DNA of 64,000 bases, from NCBI GenBank assembly GCA_977030845.1, contig OZ365112.1:11098001-11162000 (forward strand), written 5' to 3'. Made by a program: the position numbers and the translations under genes. Shown piece by piece: positions 1,683-41,840 of this stretch (its first letter is position 1; the number at the start of each line of letters is the position of its first letter). The notes beneath the pieces are model-generated. The model was given only the letters and a program-made list of their open reading frames with translations, did not search any database and was not told the DNA's origin. Origin of the DNA: Fimbriosthenelais zetlandica (lineage: Eukaryota).

Positions 1683-2134
1683 TGCCTCTGGGTCGCTCAA
1701 ATAGTAATTTTTGGGACAAGGCTGGAACCCAGCCTTTACAAGGGATACGGCAGCAGACCTGATGAAGTTTGTACTTGATGACCAATAACGAAACACTAGT
1801 TCATAGAACTGGCATAATATATAGCTATCAATTGTAGCAGATTCTATAGAGGAACATGATTGTACTGGTCCTGCCCAGTTGCTGAAACATGAATCCATCG
1901 CCCAACCACGGGACAAGAGGAAACAATTGTGCCACGAGCAGAGCTATGTTAATTCATGCTCCTCAAGTAGGGCTCCCCAGGGTCGCTTTACCGAAGTAAG
2001 GTATGTAACATCCAGTGCTTACTGCTTTGGTCCACAGGGGAATTTCCCATGGAGGACACTACAGGCGTTGCTTATTGCACGGGCCATGCCATTAGATGGC
2101 CGAGTATGCCTTGATCAAAACTCAATATAGACCC

Positions 2135-2176
2135 GGGGCGGTTTCAAGGGAAATATGTGCTACATTAGCCCATAGG
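2135..2176. mobile_element. Partial copy of the short MITE-like family
   Basis: GGGGCGGTTTCAAGGGAAATATGTGCTACATTAGCCCATAG aligns with the reverse complement of the 57521-57607 element (GGGCACGTTTCAGAAGGAAGATGCGCTACATTAGCCCATAG). Confidence 0.6.
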
Positions 2177-5100
2177 CTCATCATTGGATGGTGTAGAACT
2201 TGTCCATGAAAAAGCCTCCAGCTGTCCCTGCTCCTCGTGGGAAAATGCTGTGATGCTTTCTGACTAAATATTTCACTGATAGAATGCACAAAATAACCTG
2301 TATCGCATCGCAATTTGCTAAACAATGTAAAAAAACATAAATGTAGCAATGGAGATCTTGCATTTAATCAAGGACGTCATTTTGCTTTGGTTGCTTTGTT
2401 AAGCCTAATTCCTTTCTCCAGATCCAATGTGTAATAGATGAATTTAATCAGGGTAATAGACCGCTAAGGCTTTTACCAGACCTGATACTTTGAATTTGGC
2501 ATGACTGTAGGCTAAGTATACTTATATGATGTATGGAAATGGTTTCTAGCAGAGGTTGCTTTGATGTAGCCATTATTGCCTGACCACCTGTGATATATGT
2601 CATTGAATAATGTAGAGAGACATTCTATGGCTGGACATCTATACATATGATCTGATTGTGAGGAATAACAGGTGGGATATTTGTGGTATTTTGGACGTGT
2701 GAAATTTGGCGATCAATGACTGGTTCCGGATAGCATAGAGATCAATAGACACGGATAGTGGGTGACAATAGACAAAGCAATATCATAATGGCCAGGTCTA
2801 GGCTTCAAGCTTCAAAGGTCCAATGGTATATGTCACTCAAGGGCAACAATAAGTGCTTTGGTGAGTCAGCCATTGTATGATTATTGATTGTATTCAGCAA
2901 ATATAAGAGACCGAAAGTAGAGGAAACTGCCTATCATAGCAGAGGCTTGTATTATTAATAATATAATGCACTTATAACCTTATGTAACCATAGCTTATGA
3001 AATGGCCCCCTGAGTAATATATATTATGGATCCAGCATGGGCTTTAATATTGTACTTAATAATGGAGCATAATGATGTTCACTAATCCCACTGTTGGCCT
3101 TGGAATAGAACACGCATACGATTGATGGATGAAATAGAATGCATGAATTGTTGATATCCAGTGAAGATCGATGGGTCATCTTCTCCATCATTCTGTCATC
3201 CTCTGATTATTTTTCGCTACTCACACGTGAATTTTTACACACCTCCATGTTCCATTGCCGCATGTTCTATGCTTCCTGATTAGTTTGAAATTGTGTGCGT
3301 TTCCTCTTCCCTCAATTCCAAAGATATTTCGTTTTCCCAGCCAGACAGGGTTTTTTTTAACAGATTGGATTATTCAAAATGCTTATTGCACTGCCTCAGG
3401 ACGGCTCGAATCTAGTATTTATATGACCAATTCCCAAAATGTTTAACCTATCAATTAGTTGCATTATTTAGTTATGCTATTTTGTATTCCTCCTTAATTA
3501 GATCGTTTAGCTCCTCACACCTCAGCGTGGAGCTATATGACATTGTACATAATTTGGACCAAGTCTGATAATGATATATATCTATAGATTTATGTCTATG
3601 CAAAGGCATATGTGTAGGTGAAAACATGGGAATAACTGATCGATAGCATCATCATAGGTGAGATGTTTCTGACAAGATATGACTAAATGTAGCCGCACAT
3701 TATTCATTCACACGTCCTCTTAGTACATGTTTATCAATAATTGATATGACAAATGGTTGACGTTTTATGATCCCTGTCACATTACAGTCACTCTGCCAAC
3801 AAGACCAGGCTTAGTTTCACTACAATATGGAGAGTTATGGCCATATATCACCCATAAATAGTAAGTTCTGTTTGCTTATTAATTGTTCATATAGTCCCCT
3901 AAATGATGGTAAGAATACGGGAGGTCGCTGGTTCAAACACCGAAGTGTTCCCTTTGATTGGGTGAGGAGGTTTTGCCACTGATAGTAATATTAGATAGGA
4001 TAGATAGTCAGTTGGTTTTGTCAATGATTGCATGCTTTTTCTACTGATGGTATAGGTTAGCTGGTTGCCTTTGTCAGTGATGGTTTAGGATGCTGGTTGC
4101 TTTTGTCTTCGTTTATTTATACCTATTTCCTGCTGACCCCAAACTGTTAAATCCTGGGCTCATGACCGTGTGCCCAAGTCACGTATGATTAGAAGACAAT
4201 GAGCTGTTAGTGGGGCAAGGAAAGCAGCTTGTGCACCTGTGTGTGAGCACCTCACAGAGTGTTCCTAATGGAGCCTATTGTCTGAACTCATGGGTTGGGC
4301 AGCAATTGATTGCCATTTATGCCAGGCTTTTGAGCACAAAGCTTCTATTGGCAGGCAATTTTGGGTCGATCAAACAGACGCTGACAGGTTGAGGTGGTCA
4401 TTGCAGGTCAAAAGAGCATCTCACAAACCTAGCTATAGTACACAGATGACAACCATTTTCTGGGTTCTATGATCTTGGTTATAACTGAATCGTAATTTTT
4501 GGTCAGATATCAGTAATTTCAGGTCATGAATCATTCATTTTAGGCCAAAAATGACCCTTTTGGATAGATGTACATGGCCTCTAAGCATTTTCTGTATGGC
4601 CTTGGTTATAACTGAATCTCGGCAATTTTGAAAAGATTCACATCTGAAGGTGAAAATTACTGACCTGTTTTTTTTCTTCGAAGATTAAACCTAATAAAAT
4701 TTGACAATCCTTAAATCAATGGCTCAACTTCCCTTGTGGACATAAGACATCAAAGAGAGGTGGGGAAAGGTGGTTGAAGCTCCTAAATAGTTCCTTGTTC
4801 CTTTCCCTTTGTCCTCTATAGAATGTGATTGATGTGTGGCGCCAAATCCTCGGAAGGGAAGGCCGCTCAATCCCATTACAATCCAACTGTGAGAAAGTCT
4901 CAGGCCCTCTCAGGGATGGCAAGGTAATCACTCCGCTTGTTGCACGCCACCATTTTCTGTTATGCCAACAAGGGAAAGGAGCTGAGGCCGTGGTGAATGG
5001 GAGGCCCAGTATGGAACAAGTCCAATTGAAAATGTCCTCTGAGACGTGCAGGAAAATCCCCTGCGAAATGAGGGCACGTTTCATGGAAATTGAAAACGTT

Positions 5101-23439: not shown

Positions 23440-25146
23440 TTATGAACACCAATTTATATCCTCTATACACTTGAATCGAAGCCATAGCATGAGCACTTGA
23501 CTCTCACGAGAAAGCTTCTCGAAGAGCGGCTCTTCTTCTGGTGTCCAATTCTCAGCAGCTGCCTGATTTACAAATGGGGGTGGCATAGCTCTTGTCCATC
23601 GGTTCCTTTTCATACGCTTTTGCTCCAAGACCATCAGCCTTAGAAACGTCCTATCCTTCCAATAGAGACATGATCCGCATGCTAAGCATACCCAACTCTC
23701 GCAGTCTTCACTACATATCCGTGTTGCACAAGATCCACTCTTGATTAATATCTCCTGGTCTTTGACGAGTTTAGTCAAAGGCTTCTGAGATCTTATGCTT
23801 GACATTTTATTGAGACCAGTGAACTCTATTATGTCCTCAAAGAATTGGTGCGTTGCTTTCTGATCTGTCAGATTGCGAGGTCCGAAAAATATTCTCCACA
23901 CCTTCCTGAATCGGTTCATCTCTTGTATCCATGGGTTCAGTCCTTCATCCACCATAAAGTCCATTCTGTATATCTCAAAACGGTTGTTCATGGGTATCTT
24001 AACTAAATCCTTTCCAAGTAGAGGAATTGTGTCATTCACTATCAATGGTTCCTTAGCCATAGCTGACTCGGTTACCGCCCGAATCATATTCACTGCTAGC
24101 TTTTCAGGATCATAACCTTTAGATGACAAATACCTGAAGAGAACTTGTTTTTCTGTTGATTCAGGGTTCTCTTCGAACATCTCGCTAAATCCTTCCTTCA
24201 TTCTGAGTGGAATAAAATTTGGTGGTTCTATGTAGCTGAATGTATTGGAAGAGTTGAAGGGTAGATATTTGTCATGGAAGCATTTGATGGGCCATTCCAC
24301 ATTGTAAACGTACATGGTGAGTGGCCATGATCTTGTTATTAACATCTGTAAACCAACATCAAATTTATAACCTTCAACTAACAACGGGTTCATCAAGAAC
24401 TCTGTCACTAGTTTATCGACTGGTGGTTTTTCGACCAACTCTGCTGTAGTTTTCAACTTCAGGCCTTTATGTGTCTGACTTTTAACCACCCATAAATGAT
24501 CCGACTTGTTCCTACCTTCCAAACTCATATACTTGTTGAAGACTTTTTCTTGGGATGGAAGCATGAATGTAGGTTTGATGAATGAAACGGGTCCATTTGA
24601 CACTAAGTTAGATTTAACATGTAAGTGCTCTAGTCCAGGTAGTGATAGGACCCGTTGATGTGGCTCTATCACAGGCTTCAGCTTCGGCATGCAGATGTCA
24701 TATTCCTTGTCACTATGCATCCAAAACACATCCCATTCTGCTGGTTCCTCCATTGAAAAAACAACACTAAATCCATAATTTCTGAAAGCGTCTATGAGAG
24801 GGAGATACTTTGAACATATCGCTGCTATTGTAGATGGGGGTTCTTTTGTTGAACCTGGCAAACACATCCAGAAAATTGGCACTGAAGCTGTTAACCATCC
24901 GTCCCTTTGGGTATAATCATCTTTTACTCCATTAATACAGGCTCTAATGATAGGAGTTATATTGACTGCTACCGATAGTGATGTTTTAAGTTTCTCAGCT
25001 GCTTTTAGTTGTGTTGCCTCTAGCGTGTCTAAAGAGGTGGACCTGTGGTCAACTGCGATATTCCTTGTGGATGACCAAAAAAAGATGAGCATGATCATAG
25101 CCGTGCCTGCTACAATCAGCATCCGACCCTTTCTGAACCTAATCAT
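23440..25146 (-). CDS. Tubulin-tyrosine-ligase (TTL/TTLL) family ATP-grasp protein, ttll-15-like, with N-terminal type II signal anchor; CDS in a single exon (568 aa)
   Basis: The 594-codon open frame is far beyond chance. The track start at 25224 is TTG and the first ATG is at 25146 (MIRFRKGR-MLIVAGTAMIMLIFFW). TTL motifs in order: WDVFW, HQRVLSLPG, WVVKS, EFLMNPLLVEGYKFDVG, FEIYRMDFMVDEGLNPWIQEMN (canonical [22 protein letters not shown]). A C-terminal Cys cluster CATRICSEDCESWVCLACGSC and KFD-x-G in place of KFD-x-R resemble the ttll-15-like group as I recall it. Confidence 0.9.
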   Translation of the reverse strand: MIRFRKGRMLIVAGTAMIMLIFFWSSTRNIAVDHRSTSLDTLEATQLKAAEKLKTSLSVAVNITPIIRACINGVKDDYTQRDGWLTASVPIFWMCLPGSTKEPPSTIAAICSKYLPLIDAFRNYGFSVVFSMEEPAEWDVFWMHSDKEYDICMPKLKPVIEPHQRVLSLPGLEHLHVKSNLVSNGPVSFIKPTFMLPSQEKVFNKYMSLEGRNKSDHLWVVKSQTHKGLKLKTTAELVEKPPVDKLVTEFLMNPLLVEGYKFDVGLQMLITRSWPLTMYVYNVEWPIKCFHDKYLPFNSSNTFSYIEPPNFIPLRMKEGFSEMFEENPESTEKQVLFRYLSSKGYDPEKLAVNMIRAVTESAMAKEPLIVNDTIPLLGKDLVKIPMNNRFEIYRMDFMVDEGLNPWIQEMNRFRKVWRIFFGPRNLTDQKATHQFFEDIIEFTGLNKMSSIRSQKPLTKLVKDQEILIKSGSCATRICSEDCESWVCLACGSCLYWKDRTFLRLMVLEQKRMKRNRWTRAMPPPFVNQAAAENWTPEEEPLFEKLSRESQVLMLWLRFKCIEDINWCS

Positions 25147-25154
25147 GTTCAATC

Positions 25155-25170
25155 CTGAAAAAATCGTCAA
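25155..25170 (-). other. Splice acceptor (ttttttcag|GATTGAACATG) 8 nt upstream of the TTL-like ATG; the exon starts at 25154
   Basis: Polypyrimidine tract plus CAG on the minus strand directly before the start codon. This implies an unidentified upstream 5' exon; the junction is in frame as phase 1, so a coding extension is possible. Confidence 0.65.
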
Positions 25171-25984
25171 TATACAAACAGTTGAGTCGCAGAAGTAGTT
25201 GCAAATCGTGATCTGTCTAACCAACTGTGCAACGAGGCATAATTATGGACAGTCAAATGAAAGCACTTCTTCATGATCCCCCCAAAAATGTCAAGCTTCT
25301 TTGACATGACATTATAAAAAAAATGTCACGTATAAAATCTGATCCTCCTTTAAACCTGCTGGGTCAGGTCTCTCTTTGAGATTTTGTGTCACTTCTCTGG
25401 GCGTACAATAAACGCACTGGCAATGTTTTTTTATGAGATTGATGGGGTCTTATTCACAACTTTTGAACCACAACTATGAATTGTGATTTAGAGAGTAACT
25501 TGTTATTTGAGAGTAACTTGTTATTTGAGCAAGGAACCCGGGAGTACCAAAAATACGGACAACCTTTCTGTCAAATAGTGGTTGTTGGTAGGCTACCACT
25601 GAGTGGTGAAGCAACCTTTTGTATGGACAACCTATTGAGCTATGTTTTCATTTTCCTTTCCATAATAGTGTACCGACCTGGCCCTGAAACGTCCAATGTC
25701 TATGTATCACATATTATGTTGCCATGGTCACGGTCTACCCCGTATGGTTCACAGTGTAAGACTAAGTTACACACTTTTAATTGATCATTAAATAGGCCTA
25801 TATGATATCCATATGTATCAAACAGTAGAAAACTGCTGGTTGAAACCAGGTTTATTGAAAATTAACAGTATTGCACTCTCTGATATCTAAAACAATACAG
25901 GCGTGTCCAAACTTTTAGTCTACATTGCTTAGTTCGTCTGAATGAATGATTAGATTTGGATAGTGAAATGATTATAAATAAGTT

Positions 25985-40058: not shown

Positions 40059-40885
40059 ATGCCTGGAGGAATTCATCATCCGAATCAATATCATAAGTCA
40101 CCCCACCAGTCTCCACAGCACAGACCTAAACCTCCTGGTGCCCCTGGATACGGTCCTCAAGGTCAACCCTATCAAGGTCAAAACCCCCAAGGTTATGTTA
40201 ACCAAGGTCAAAGTTACGCATCTCACCACCATGGACACCAGGATCATGGTCCTCCAAGCCATGGGGCTGCGGGTCAAGGGTATTACTCTGGAGGTCACGG
40301 TAAGGGGTCTGGAGGTCATTACAGTCCCCATCATGGCAGTCCGAGTCACTCAGCCTATAAAAGTCATGACGGCTACATGTCCACCCCGTCAATGCACGGG
40401 AGACCCAGCTCACCGCGCCCGGGCTCTCCACGGCTCTGTGACCGCCCCTTATCCCCTCACATGGAACGTAGGGCATCATCACCTCGACCAGGTAGCCGGC
40501 CGACATCCCCCCGACCCGCCAGCCGACCCACGTCCCCCCACCCCGGTGACCGTCAACGTCCAACCTCCCCCAGACCCTCTGACAAACCCACGTCCCGCTC
40601 CCTTGACCACCCAGCCCCCCAGCGTCATGGCCACAGCCCTCCTCTCTATGCTCATCACGGTCCCCCTCCCCCTCATCACGTTTCCCCTCATCATGTTAGC
40701 AGGCGGGACCCTGGAGGATCACCTATCGCCACCTCACGACAGCCTCGTGATCGTGCCTACAGGCATCGCCCTCCACCCAAACGTATACAGCGCCAGGACA
40801 GTCGCTGTATGGCCATACACAAGAGTTACGATGATGATAAGATTGTCATGCCCACAGGACTACCTACCAAATATGGCAATCCCCA
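40059..40885 (+). CDS. First coding exon (1A) of a plus-strand multi-exon gene; His/Gly/Gln/Pro-rich disordered N-terminus with RPxSP repeats
   Basis: 276-codon GC-rich frame, AAAATG start context, strong acceptor tttgtatatttgcag|G (exon begins 39926) and strong donor CA|GTGAGT at 40886 (phase 2). The protein is coherent low-complexity sequence (MPGGIHHPNQYHKSPHQSPQHRP...RPTSPRP...KYGNP). Confidence 0.8.
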
Positions 40886-41840
40886 GTGAGTATTTCTTCA
40901 TTTCATTTATTTTTCGCTCATTACATTTTCCCAATCTGACTGTGCCCTATTATTTCAGAGTCATCCAGTAGTTTTTCTATAGATGTTATCCTTTGTATTT
41001 TCTCCATTTTTTTCTCCATCTTGTTCTATGCCCACACATTGAAACTTAATCCGACAAAACGTCAAACAAATAAGAGATGGCGAAGTATTAGGTAACACCA
41101 CGCGTATAGAACTCGGAGCGGGCTTATTAAAGGCACGAGCTGAACATTAGGTTGGATGAAGTGCTTGTGAGGGACCTTATCTCGTGTTATCCATGCACAT
41201 GCAGCGGAAAGTGATCAGAAAATCCGATTTGTCTCCCACAACTTTTCCATTCCGCACAATTCCCTGCATCATATATCAATTTATTCATGTCTTGTCGCCT
41301 GGGAATTGAGATTTATAATTCAAAGATAGGACTTGATGAATTAGATAGTGTGTAGAGAATGTCATGTTCCCACCCTTTATCTGATTATAGATATGATGAA
41401 AGAGGCGCTCAAGAGTCACTCTCTCTTGAGACATCCTATTTTACACTATTCAGTCTAGTGTTGACAATAATCTATTTTACTTGACAATCTTATTAATTAT
41501 GAAATAGTTGTGACGAATGAAAATTAAATGAGTGTTGAATATTGATTAAAATTATACTGCGAGAACCTGCAGTAGTTTAATTATTCAGTGCATAGTCAAA
41601 TGCATCCATTCTTCACATGGCCTAATTTTGAAATAAGAAACATTTATATTTCCCCAGCCCTTTCATCTGATGTTCCTGCATGTTTTCCCATGCAGTTTGT
41701 GTTTGATTGAAGTATATCTAACAAAATGCCTGATAAATCATCATGAAATGCTTATCTTTGATTAATAACTTGTCATGAGAACCAAGTTGTATGATGCTTG
41801 TATTTAACCTACCAAAACAAGCCTCCCAACAAGCCGGGAA

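Follow-up and report, generated by a model that had tools for sequence, protein, structure and literature searches.

Introduction

Can a TTL-type ligase operate on the luminal side of the secretory pathway, where it would not meet tubulin? The "tubulin code" is written by TTLL enzymes, and all characterised members are, to our knowledge, active in the cytosol or the nucleus. The question is raised by a gene on contig OZ365112.1 of Fimbriosthenelais zetlandica, located in the 64-kb stretch of DNA that was analysed (the window). A preliminary description of this locus, made from the letters of the DNA, had pointed to a TTL-family protein laid out like a Golgi type II enzyme with a divergent substrate site. 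We consider it fairly probable that the gene is an intron-less TTLL15 paralogue encoding a luminal ATP-grasp ligase of a non-tubulin substrate. The evidence for this reading, and for the alternatives to it, is presented below.

An Intact Single-Exon Gene

The complete coding sequence occupies positions 23440-25146 on the minus strand in a single exon, with 568 codons from the first ATG and the stop codon at 23440-23442, so the reading frame is open as originally described. The frame stays open for 26 codons upstream of the ATG, up to a TAA, and that stretch contains no further ATG. It is by far the longest ORF of the 64-kb window, the runner-up being a low complexity frame of 318 aa, and a Pfam scan of the neighbouring ORFs gave no matches. 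An acceptor-like TTTTTTCAG (25155..25163, minus strand) ends 8 nt ahead of the ATG. It may mark a 5'-UTR intron or, with lower probability, a phase-1 coding exon upstream.

The gene has one coding exon versus about 12–15 in the orthologue genes and probably derives from a retrocopy. Marks of retroposition (a poly(A) signal, an A-tail) were sought, and only an AATAAA 2.1 kb downstream was found, which is uninformative. The exon count, together with the fact that the protein is missing from the searched protein collections, where the best match is 27–31% identical, might also be taken to indicate a retrocopy that is decaying or not expressed and in which the frame is still open by chance. We regard this as very unlikely, since neutral drift to such a level of identity would have interrupted the frame of 568 codons and would not have spared the anchor, the Mg/ATP residues, and the complete set of eight family cysteines. 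An A stands at position -3 of the ATG, and similar divergent paralogues are represented in three sequencing runs by near-identical 4.65-kb contigs, whose matching ends would fit transcripts.

Membership in the TTLL15 Family

The assignment to the TTL-type ATP-grasp proteins was confirmed with HMMER, as residues 187-411 match Pfam PF03133 with 67.5 bits (cutoff 20.1; E 1.4e-18). Homologues were collected by an exhaustive HMMER search; a word-indexed search, run with either the single sequence or a profile, gave only two Bactrocera matches. The closest named relatives are "ttll-15" proteins of cnidarians, a hemichordate, amphioxus, lampreys, molluscs, insects, and a nematode, and the identity to any TTLL15 member is 21–31%. 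The best Swiss-Prot match to the predicted fold is C. elegans ttll-15 (UniProt Q21279), aligned end to end with a Foldseek E of 6e-32; the Foldseek match to TTLL6 has E 3e-19 and a TM by target of 0.7, and PDB searches gave matches to TTLL7 and TTLL6.

A phylogeny, a check suggested earlier, placed the protein among the TTLL15-named sequences; this clade split from the canonical TTLLs at 100* in a tree whose outgroup consisted of protist TTLLs only and in which our protein is long-branched. It shares the long branch with two other divergent sequences, and this branch and the single exon bear out the idea of a divergent, lineage-specific paralogue. All features by which TTLL15 proteins are recognised are present, namely the grouping in the tree, the eight-Cys tail, a basic N-terminal tail followed by a single anchor, and the G265/R394 pair. 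By these features of its sequence, the protein is a fast-evolving, divergent member of a pan-metazoan TTLL15 family extending from cnidarians to lampreys. The subfamily is ancient in animals and, while kept over this range, it has been lost in jawed vertebrates.

N-Terminal Anchor and Predicted Topology

The N-terminus starts with a basic tail (residues 1-8; 25123..25146, minus strand) containing four Arg/Lys residues and predicted to be cytosolic. It is followed by a hydrophobic segment (residues 9-24; 25075..25122, minus strand) with a KD17 of 2.20, which may be a signal anchor or a signal peptide and sits inside a helix modelled by AF2 over residues 10-58. Both elements agree with the basic N-terminus and the 16-residue hydrophobic helix noted at the outset. 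The stem (residues 25-90; 24877..25074, minus strand) is partly helical with low confidence (pLDDT 49–67 in 10-residue blocks), displays no conservation in the alignment with relatives, and is longer than in other TTLL15 members.

Topology was assessed from hydropathy and the charge rule. The charge flanking the segment is +5 on the N side and 0 on the C side, and the TTLL15 family means are +2.7 versus 0.0, with the N side more positive in 29 members, equal in 6, and less positive in 2. An N-terminal hydrophobic segment is present in 38 of the 43 full-length TTLL15 members: in 37, it is the sole such segment and lies in roughly the first 110 residues (KD17 >= 1.8), and in the 38th the segment appears once the transcript ORF is read from an upstream ATG. 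No comparable N-terminal segment is present in the canonical TTLLs that served as outgroup rows in the trees. The order of a type II protein, with a positive-inside anchor, a stem, and then the catalytic domain, can thus be read from the sequence. The lumen-facing layout that had been proposed for this gene fits it well but is not peculiar to it, being family-wide.

Short basic tails, signal anchors, flexible stems, and globular catalytic domains with cysteines are the hallmarks of Golgi type II enzymes such as glycosyltransferases and sulfotransferases, and secretory kinases such as Fam20C depend on luminal ATP. Our protein resembles the former in layout and, like Fam20C, would need ATP in the lumen, although its fold and chemistry are unrelated to either.

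A similar placement of the TTL domain is predicted for proteins from non-animal eukaryotes. In P0139, P0140, and P0099, a signal peptide precedes the TTL domain, which is followed by an EGF-like module and a C-terminal TM segment with a basic tail. P0087 is organised likewise, except that its available sequence starts without the signal peptide, and both P0087 and P0140 score above the Pfam EGF_2 cutoff. The four group with TTLL15 in the tree and share with our protein the Gly/Arg swap described below, a short ATP loop, an R-x-C motif, and a TTL domain predicted to lie outside the cytosol. They differ from it in being type I, in having the EGF-like module instead of the eight-Cys tail, and in retaining Lys at the TTLL6 K377 position. 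As far as topology can be predicted, the lumen-facing layout is ancestral to the TTLL15 family as a whole and to this related non-animal group, and nearly every TTLL15 member looks built for the secretory pathway, beyond the reach of tubulin.

The six N-x-S/T sequons at residues 62, 213, 298, 371, 425, and 533, which the preliminary description had counted among the luminal features, are all present but lend no support to the topology. Shuffled sequences would be expected to contain 3.15 (P = 0.08), and the observed/expected ratio in the TTLL15 family is 1.33 versus 1.27 in the cytosolic control set of canonical TTLLs. Two "conserved" sequons of the family are merely the catalytic N-M-S and N-L-S motif. 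Sequon enrichment was therefore rejected as luminal evidence; with a count not above chance and a family ratio no higher than that of the control, the sequons are silent on topology.

The Cysteine-Rich Tail and Access to Tubulin

The Cys-rich tail reported earlier was confirmed as a C-terminal domain (residues 456-568; 23443..23781, minus strand; pLDDT 94–97) with eight Cys at positions 473, 478, 482, 487, 490, 493, 560, and 567. All lie in columns near-invariant in the family, and none of the eight occurs in canonical TTLLs. Where relatives have lost conserved-column Cys, they have lost them pairwise: 482 with 493, 478 with 487 (twice), 473 with 493, and 560 with 567. This pattern is a suggestive hint of disulfides, and the tail is probably disulfide-stapled. 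A ninth Cys is present in 12 relatives, so that the even count does not hold throughout, which weakens strict parity as an argument.

The tail cysteines could instead bind metal, and the CxxCxxC spacing could suit such a site. On this interpretation, the protein would be a membrane-tethered, cytosol-facing glutamylase of tubulin or another cytosolic protein, with its helix on the surface of an organelle and its Cys cluster binding zinc. The family profile matches the glutamylases TTLL6 and TTLL7 best (E 2e-57 and 1.7e-53, respectively), and all databases name the TTLL15 family as tubulin polyglutamylase. Nevertheless, we find a cytosolic orientation improbable. The conserved Cys are lost in pairs rather than in fours, the charge bias is opposite to that expected of an N-out anchor, and in the relatives with cleavable signal peptide, EGF-like module, and C-terminal TM segment the same type of TTL domain is placed outside. 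The tail, with a net charge of +1 (family mean +2.1), is not cationic, and a microtubule-binding domain was not detected in TTLL-15 (PMC5051658). Loss of ttll-15 in C. elegans does not lower GT335 (tubulin glutamylation) staining, which the mutants retain (PMC5051658), and the specificity of TTLL-15 was stated as one that "has not been tested" (PMC7252309).

TTLL6 and TTLL7 (PDB 6VZT and 4YLR) share with our protein the ATP-grasp TTL core with the extended domain, the lysines, and the Mg ligands; they have no signal anchor and carry a cationic microtubule-binding domain instead of the Cys-rich tail. The cationic domain and the cytosolic access expected of a tubulin glutamylase are replaced here by a tail of charge +1 and a predicted luminal location, across a membrane from tubulin.

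A Rearranged Active Site

The TTL-type ATP-grasp catalytic domain, comprising the core and the extended TTL domain, spans residues 91-455 (23782..24876, minus strand) with pLDDT mostly > 85. The ATP-binding lysines K178 and K222 and the Mg2+ ligands D396, E409, and N411 all lie in conserved columns, which upholds the earlier recognition of the catalytic K, D, and ExN positions (K222, D396, E409, and N411); R394 and K333 are also retained. In the alignment, D396 and E409 were mapped onto TTLL6 D346 and E359, with TTLL6 K125 included in the same mapping of the ATP lysine and the Mg ligands.

TTLL6 R219 and R241 are each essential. The equivalent of TTLL6 R219 (TTL R202) is G265 (24352..24354, minus strand), and that of TTLL6 R241 (TTL R222) is K288 (24283..24285, minus strand), a position with Arg in 53 of 57 family sequences. 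The two gamma-phosphate arginines expected of a tubulin glutamylase are thus Gly and Lys here. At the same time, an Arg, R394, stands two residues before the Mg-binding Asp (R394 to N411; 23914..23967, minus strand). The combination of Gly at the R219 position with this relocated Arg was found in 87 sequences and the canonical combination (Arg, Gly) in 23; mixed states are absent, and no sequence has Arg at both positions. According to these alignments, the TTLL15 clade has moved an essential arginine.

Further changes concern the ATP loop, which has a 3-residue deletion and at which two alignments disagree on the TTLL6 Q180 initiase/elongase position, and the donor site. In TTLL6, two lysines, K283 and K377, hold the donor glutamate's gamma-carboxylate; K333 is probably the equivalent of K283, while the K377 position is Tyr in the family and Thr in our protein (both by sequence alignment only). 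With one of these lysines apparently absent, unlike in TTLL6, the donor may not be glutamate.

The anchor, the eight-Cys tail, the Gly/Arg swap, and the shortened ATP loop are shared with other TTLL15 members, and differences from them, besides the single coding exon and the longer stem, include two motifs. R-F-C of the family is K-C-F here (R288K, with the "RFC" Cys shifted by one residue), and E-V-N-M-S-P-N is E-M-N-R-F-R-K, with R-F-R in place of M-S-P after ExN and a 4-residue insertion following this region. The IKCF and EMNRF divergences highlighted in the preliminary description are both real. The Arg of EMNR is not exotic, though, as R412 corresponds to TTLL7 R352 (bioRxiv 10.1101/2020.06.07.139295). 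The clade-wide exchange of R219 for Gly and of Gly for Arg, which the preliminary description had missed, is the more important change of the active site.

Since the essential R219 and R241 are Gly and Lys here, the protein could be inactive, a luminal pseudo-enzyme that has kept the fold and perhaps ATP binding, has lost ligation, and plays a binding or scaffolding role. The loss of the S-P following ExN, the lack of the Asn of ExN in the closest relative, P0003, and the very long branch agree with such a loss. We nonetheless think it unlikely, because K178, K222, D396, E409, N411, and K333 are all kept, the change from R to K at 288 is conservative, and R394 is placed where it could replace the missing arginine. 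In D-Ala-D-Ala ligase, a catalytic Arg precedes the Mg-binding Asp by two residues. The conservation of the (Gly, Arg) state in about 87 sequences, from cnidarians to chordates, argues for a working active site.

Conclusions and Perspectives

In the reading that we favour, a luminal ligase of a non-tubulin substrate, the short basic N-terminus would be left in the cytosol and the hydrophobic segment would serve either as a type II signal anchor in the membrane or as a cleavable signal peptide. This would place the stem, catalytic domain, and Cys-rich tail in the ER/Golgi lumen or, after shedding, outside the cell. There, an active site rearranged in the whole clade, with Gly at the gamma-phosphate Arg position (TTLL6 R219) and an Arg two positions ahead of the Mg-binding Asp, would draw on ATP-Mg in the lumen to join an amino acid to a substrate carboxylate. 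The substrate would most likely be a component of the secretory pathway and not tubulin. A literature search returned no description of a luminal TTLL or of a luminal ATP-grasp amino-acid ligase.

More tentatively, and with less confidence than for the single protein, the TTLL15 clade and its relatives with signal peptide, EGF-like module, and TM segment may be extracytoplasmic ATP-grasp amino-acid ligases with an undescribed modification, and the name "tubulin polyglutamylase" may be wrong family-wide. The modification proposed on this broader reading is glutamylation-like or the addition of another amino acid, to secreted or membrane proteins or to other luminal carboxylates.

If the animal TTLL15 subfamily is indeed luminal, ATP-dependent amino-acid ligation would join the modifications of the secretory pathway as a new class. 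This would also explain why tubulin studies of C. elegans repeatedly gave negative results for ttll-15, and hundreds of automatically assigned "tubulin polyglutamylase ttll-15" annotations would have to be revised. The relocated arginine, finally, offers a natural experiment on the wiring of ATP-grasp active sites.

A Fast-Evolving Paralogue of the TTLL15 Family

The minus strand between 23440 and 25146 of the window carries an open reading frame of 568 codons, counted from its first ATG. This ATG has an A at -3, and the frame extends 26 codons further 5' to a TAA, with no other ATG among those codons. Nothing else in the window is comparable, as the second-longest ORF encodes 318 residues of low complexity, and a Pfam search of the ORFs neighbouring the gene returned no match. 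An acceptor-like TTTTTTCAG (25155-25163, minus strand) lies 8 nt 5' of the start codon, a TATA-like TTTTATAA about 165 nt 5' of it (within 25147-25320, minus strand), and two ATGs fall between them. The forward strand also holds a 276-residue ORF rich in Pro, His, Ser and Gly (40059-40889), which has no Pfam match.

The only Pfam match of the protein is the TTL family PF03133 (67.5 bits; cutoff 20.1), which bears out the TTL assignment of the preliminary description. The features listed there (a basic N-terminus, a hydrophobic helix, a stem, a TTL domain with its catalytic positions, six sequons and a Cys-rich tail) were all found, each in its place. A basic stretch (residues 1-8) and a hydrophobic segment (9-24) precede a poorly ordered stretch (25-90); in the AlphaFold model (pTM 0.83, mean pLDDT 85.2) they are followed by a confident globular domain (91-455) and a very confident tail (456-568, pLDDT 94-97). 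The closest solved structures are TTLL7, TTLL6 and TTLL11, then TTL, and a fold comparison with Swiss-Prot ranks C. elegans TTLL-15 (Q21279) first, the alignment covering residues 39-567.

A word-indexed search retrieved only two fruit-fly proteins named probable tubulin polyglutamylase ttll-15. An exhaustive search with HMMER brought up 1256 relatives; E was <1e-30 for 17 of these, and none of the 1256 exceeded 31% identity to the F. zetlandica protein. Some fifty of the top matches are about 500 residues long, align to its final residue and, where named, are called 'ttll-15' or 'TTLL15'. The named proteins come from Cnidaria (Dendronephthya, Clytia), Mollusca (Mytilus, Solemya, Littorina), Hemichordata and chordates (Ptychodera; Branchiostoma; three lampreys), several insects, one ostracod and the nematode Ditylenchus. 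In trees whose outgroup consisted of protist TTLLs only, a 100* branch divides the TTLL15 group, our protein included, from the canonical TTLLs. Mytilus and Ptychodera TTLL15 have about 15 and 12 coding exons, respectively, spanning 20-25 kb. The F. zetlandica coding sequence has one, so this paralogue probably arose from a retrocopy; an upstream exon in the gene is possible. The gene adds a new and divergent member to a known family and is most plausibly a fast-evolving TTLL15 paralogue.

Two of the matches, P0003 and P0004, group with our protein at 99*, and all three have long branches. The gene call of P0003 begins too late: the ORF of its contig (L001:835-2622) starts 37 codons further 5', at an in-frame ATG of the transcript contig, and the added codons encode basic sequence together with a hydrophobic helix. 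Contigs of this type from three runs measure 4648-4658 nt and have identical ends, as expected of a transcript, with untranslated sequence of about 0.8 kb on the 5' side and about 2 kb on the 3' side. The P0003 and P0004 contigs, L001 and L004, belong to one sample (ERR14368245) and one organism, which has two or more divergent paralogues of TTLL15 type. In P0003, the closest relative of our protein, the E-x-N motif no longer has its Asn. These sequences suggest a lineage-specific expansion, some copies of which may be non-catalytic.

A Conserved Layout Predicted to Face the Lumen

Topology was read by simple rules only, in a set of 43 full-length relatives with the Cys motifs, our protein counted in. 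In 37 of the 43, a hydrophobic segment (KD17 >=1.8) lies in roughly the N-terminal 110 residues and is the only one; counting the upstream ATG of P0003 makes it 38. No equivalent segment was found in the canonical TTLLs of the tree outgroup. Over 15 residues on each side, the mean charge is +2.7 before the segment and 0.0 after it; the N-terminal flank is the more positive in 29 sequences, equal in 6 and lower in 2. The more positive flank of a membrane segment stays on the cytosolic side (the positive-inside rule), which argues for type II insertion, with the N-terminus in. The segment of many relatives does not begin until residues 20-55, too far from the N-terminus for cleavage, so it fits a signal anchor. 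The F. zetlandica segment, 16 residues long and starting at residue 9, may be a signal anchor or possibly a cleaved signal peptide; in either case the protein beyond it is predicted to be luminal.

Another group, of non-animal TTL proteins among the weaker matches, points the same way. P0139, P0140 and P0099 start with a typical cleavable signal peptide, after which come the TTL domain, an EGF-like module, a hydrophobic helix and, last, a short tail of basic character; P0087 shares this layout, but its available sequence begins without the signal peptide. Pfam EGF_2 scored above cutoff in P0140 and P0087. EGF-like modules are extracellular and disulfide-bonded, so the TTL domain of these four would lie outside, in a type I arrangement. 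In the alignment they carry the sequence signatures of TTLL15, and in the tree they fall on the TTLL15 side of the 100* branch; their architecture would be an independent pointer to an extracytosolic TTL domain. The gene of P0140 lies in a non-animal genome assembly and has another TTL gene as its neighbour. On contig L007, the gene of this group (2001-4410) lies next to one more TTL gene, on the minus strand at 376-1629, with a thiamine pyrophosphokinase gene next in line.

Eight tail cysteines are near-invariant in the TTLL15 family and absent from canonical TTLLs. Among 59 sequences covering the whole tail, 41 have eight Cys, 12 have nine, five have six and one has four. Losses at the eight conserved columns occur pairwise (482+493 in P0039; 478+487 in P0046 and P0091; 473+493 in P0064 and P0092; 560+567 in P0098), which fits disulfide partners and not two four-ligand metal sites, although the cases are few and the pairing is not fully consistent. 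Tail disulfides are therefore probable from the sequences. The six sequons, previously taken to support luminal placement, carry no such weight: 3.15 are expected by chance (P 0.08), and the sequon excess of the family does not surpass that of cytosolic TTLLs.

An Altered Active Site

The Lys of the W-I-x-K motif, which we take to bind ATP as in ATP-grasp enzymes generally, is K222, and is Lys in the family too. In TTLL6, K125 contacts the beta/gamma-phosphates of ATP, R219 coordinates the transferred gamma-phosphate and R241 holds the gamma-phosphate and the donor alpha-carboxylate, both arginines being essential; K283 and K377 serve the donor gamma-carboxylate, D346 and E359 are Mg2+ ligands, and the acceptor carboxylate is neutralised by H362, or in TTLL7 by R352 at the same position (bioRxiv 10.1101/2020.06.07.139295). 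From this structural study and HMMER alignments to TTLL6 and TTLL7, K125, D346 and E359 map to K178, D396 and E409, and K283 probably to K333; the family has the same residue at each, as at N411, the E-x-N Asn conserved in all TTLLs of the alignment.

At the position of R219 (TTL R202) stands G265 (24352-24354, minus strand), and Gly is found there throughout the TTLL15 clade and the signal peptide-TTL-EGF-TM group. Two residues before the Mg-binding Asp, at the TTLL6 G344 position, canonical TTLLs have Gly and the TTLL15 clade Arg, here R394 (23965-23967, minus strand). Among 152 matches and our protein, the two positions read Gly and Arg in 87, Arg and Gly in 23, and never Arg and Arg; the covariation is perfect across these 110 TTL proteins. 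In D-Ala-D-Ala ligase the catalytic Arg precedes the Mg-binding Asp by two residues, and a relocated gamma-phosphate Arg is for this reason a reasonable reading of the R394 position.

The second essential Arg, R241 (TTL R222), is kept by 53 of the 57 family members; our protein has Lys there (K288), as does P0003 in the alignment. This is the change noted earlier as IKCF in place of RFC. Since it comes on top of the clade-wide Gly265, the F. zetlandica protein may be catalytically impaired. The altered substrate site suspected in the preliminary description is likewise seen, as the acceptor pocket is unlike that of its own family: directly after E-x-N, at the position of TTLL6 H362, the family has Met, where our protein has Arg (R412). 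At the K377 position, placed by sequence alignment only, the family has Tyr and our protein Thr, which suggests that the donor amino acid may not be glutamate.

Implications for the TTLL15 Family

In the literature searched, TTLL-15 is labelled a glutamylase on homology alone, and some database names read 'monoglycylase TTLL15', so the naming is not based on assay. TTLL-15 has no mouse orthologue and no detectable microtubule-binding domain, and a ttll-15 deletion mutant keeps GT335 staining (PMC5051658); adding ttll-15 to multiple ttll knockouts did not lower axonal polyglutamylation (PMC11216746). A luminal, secreted or membrane-anchored TTLL was not found in that literature, which largely leaves out subscription journals, so novelty is unproven. 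The observation of a TTL-type protein with the sequence layout of a lumen-facing enzyme is confirmed, and its interpretation, put forward for one divergent paralogue, is partly supported and widened to the whole family. Judged by its conserved architecture, the TTLL15 family appears to be one of ATP-grasp ligases located within the lumen of the secretory pathway, and to be mis-described at present.
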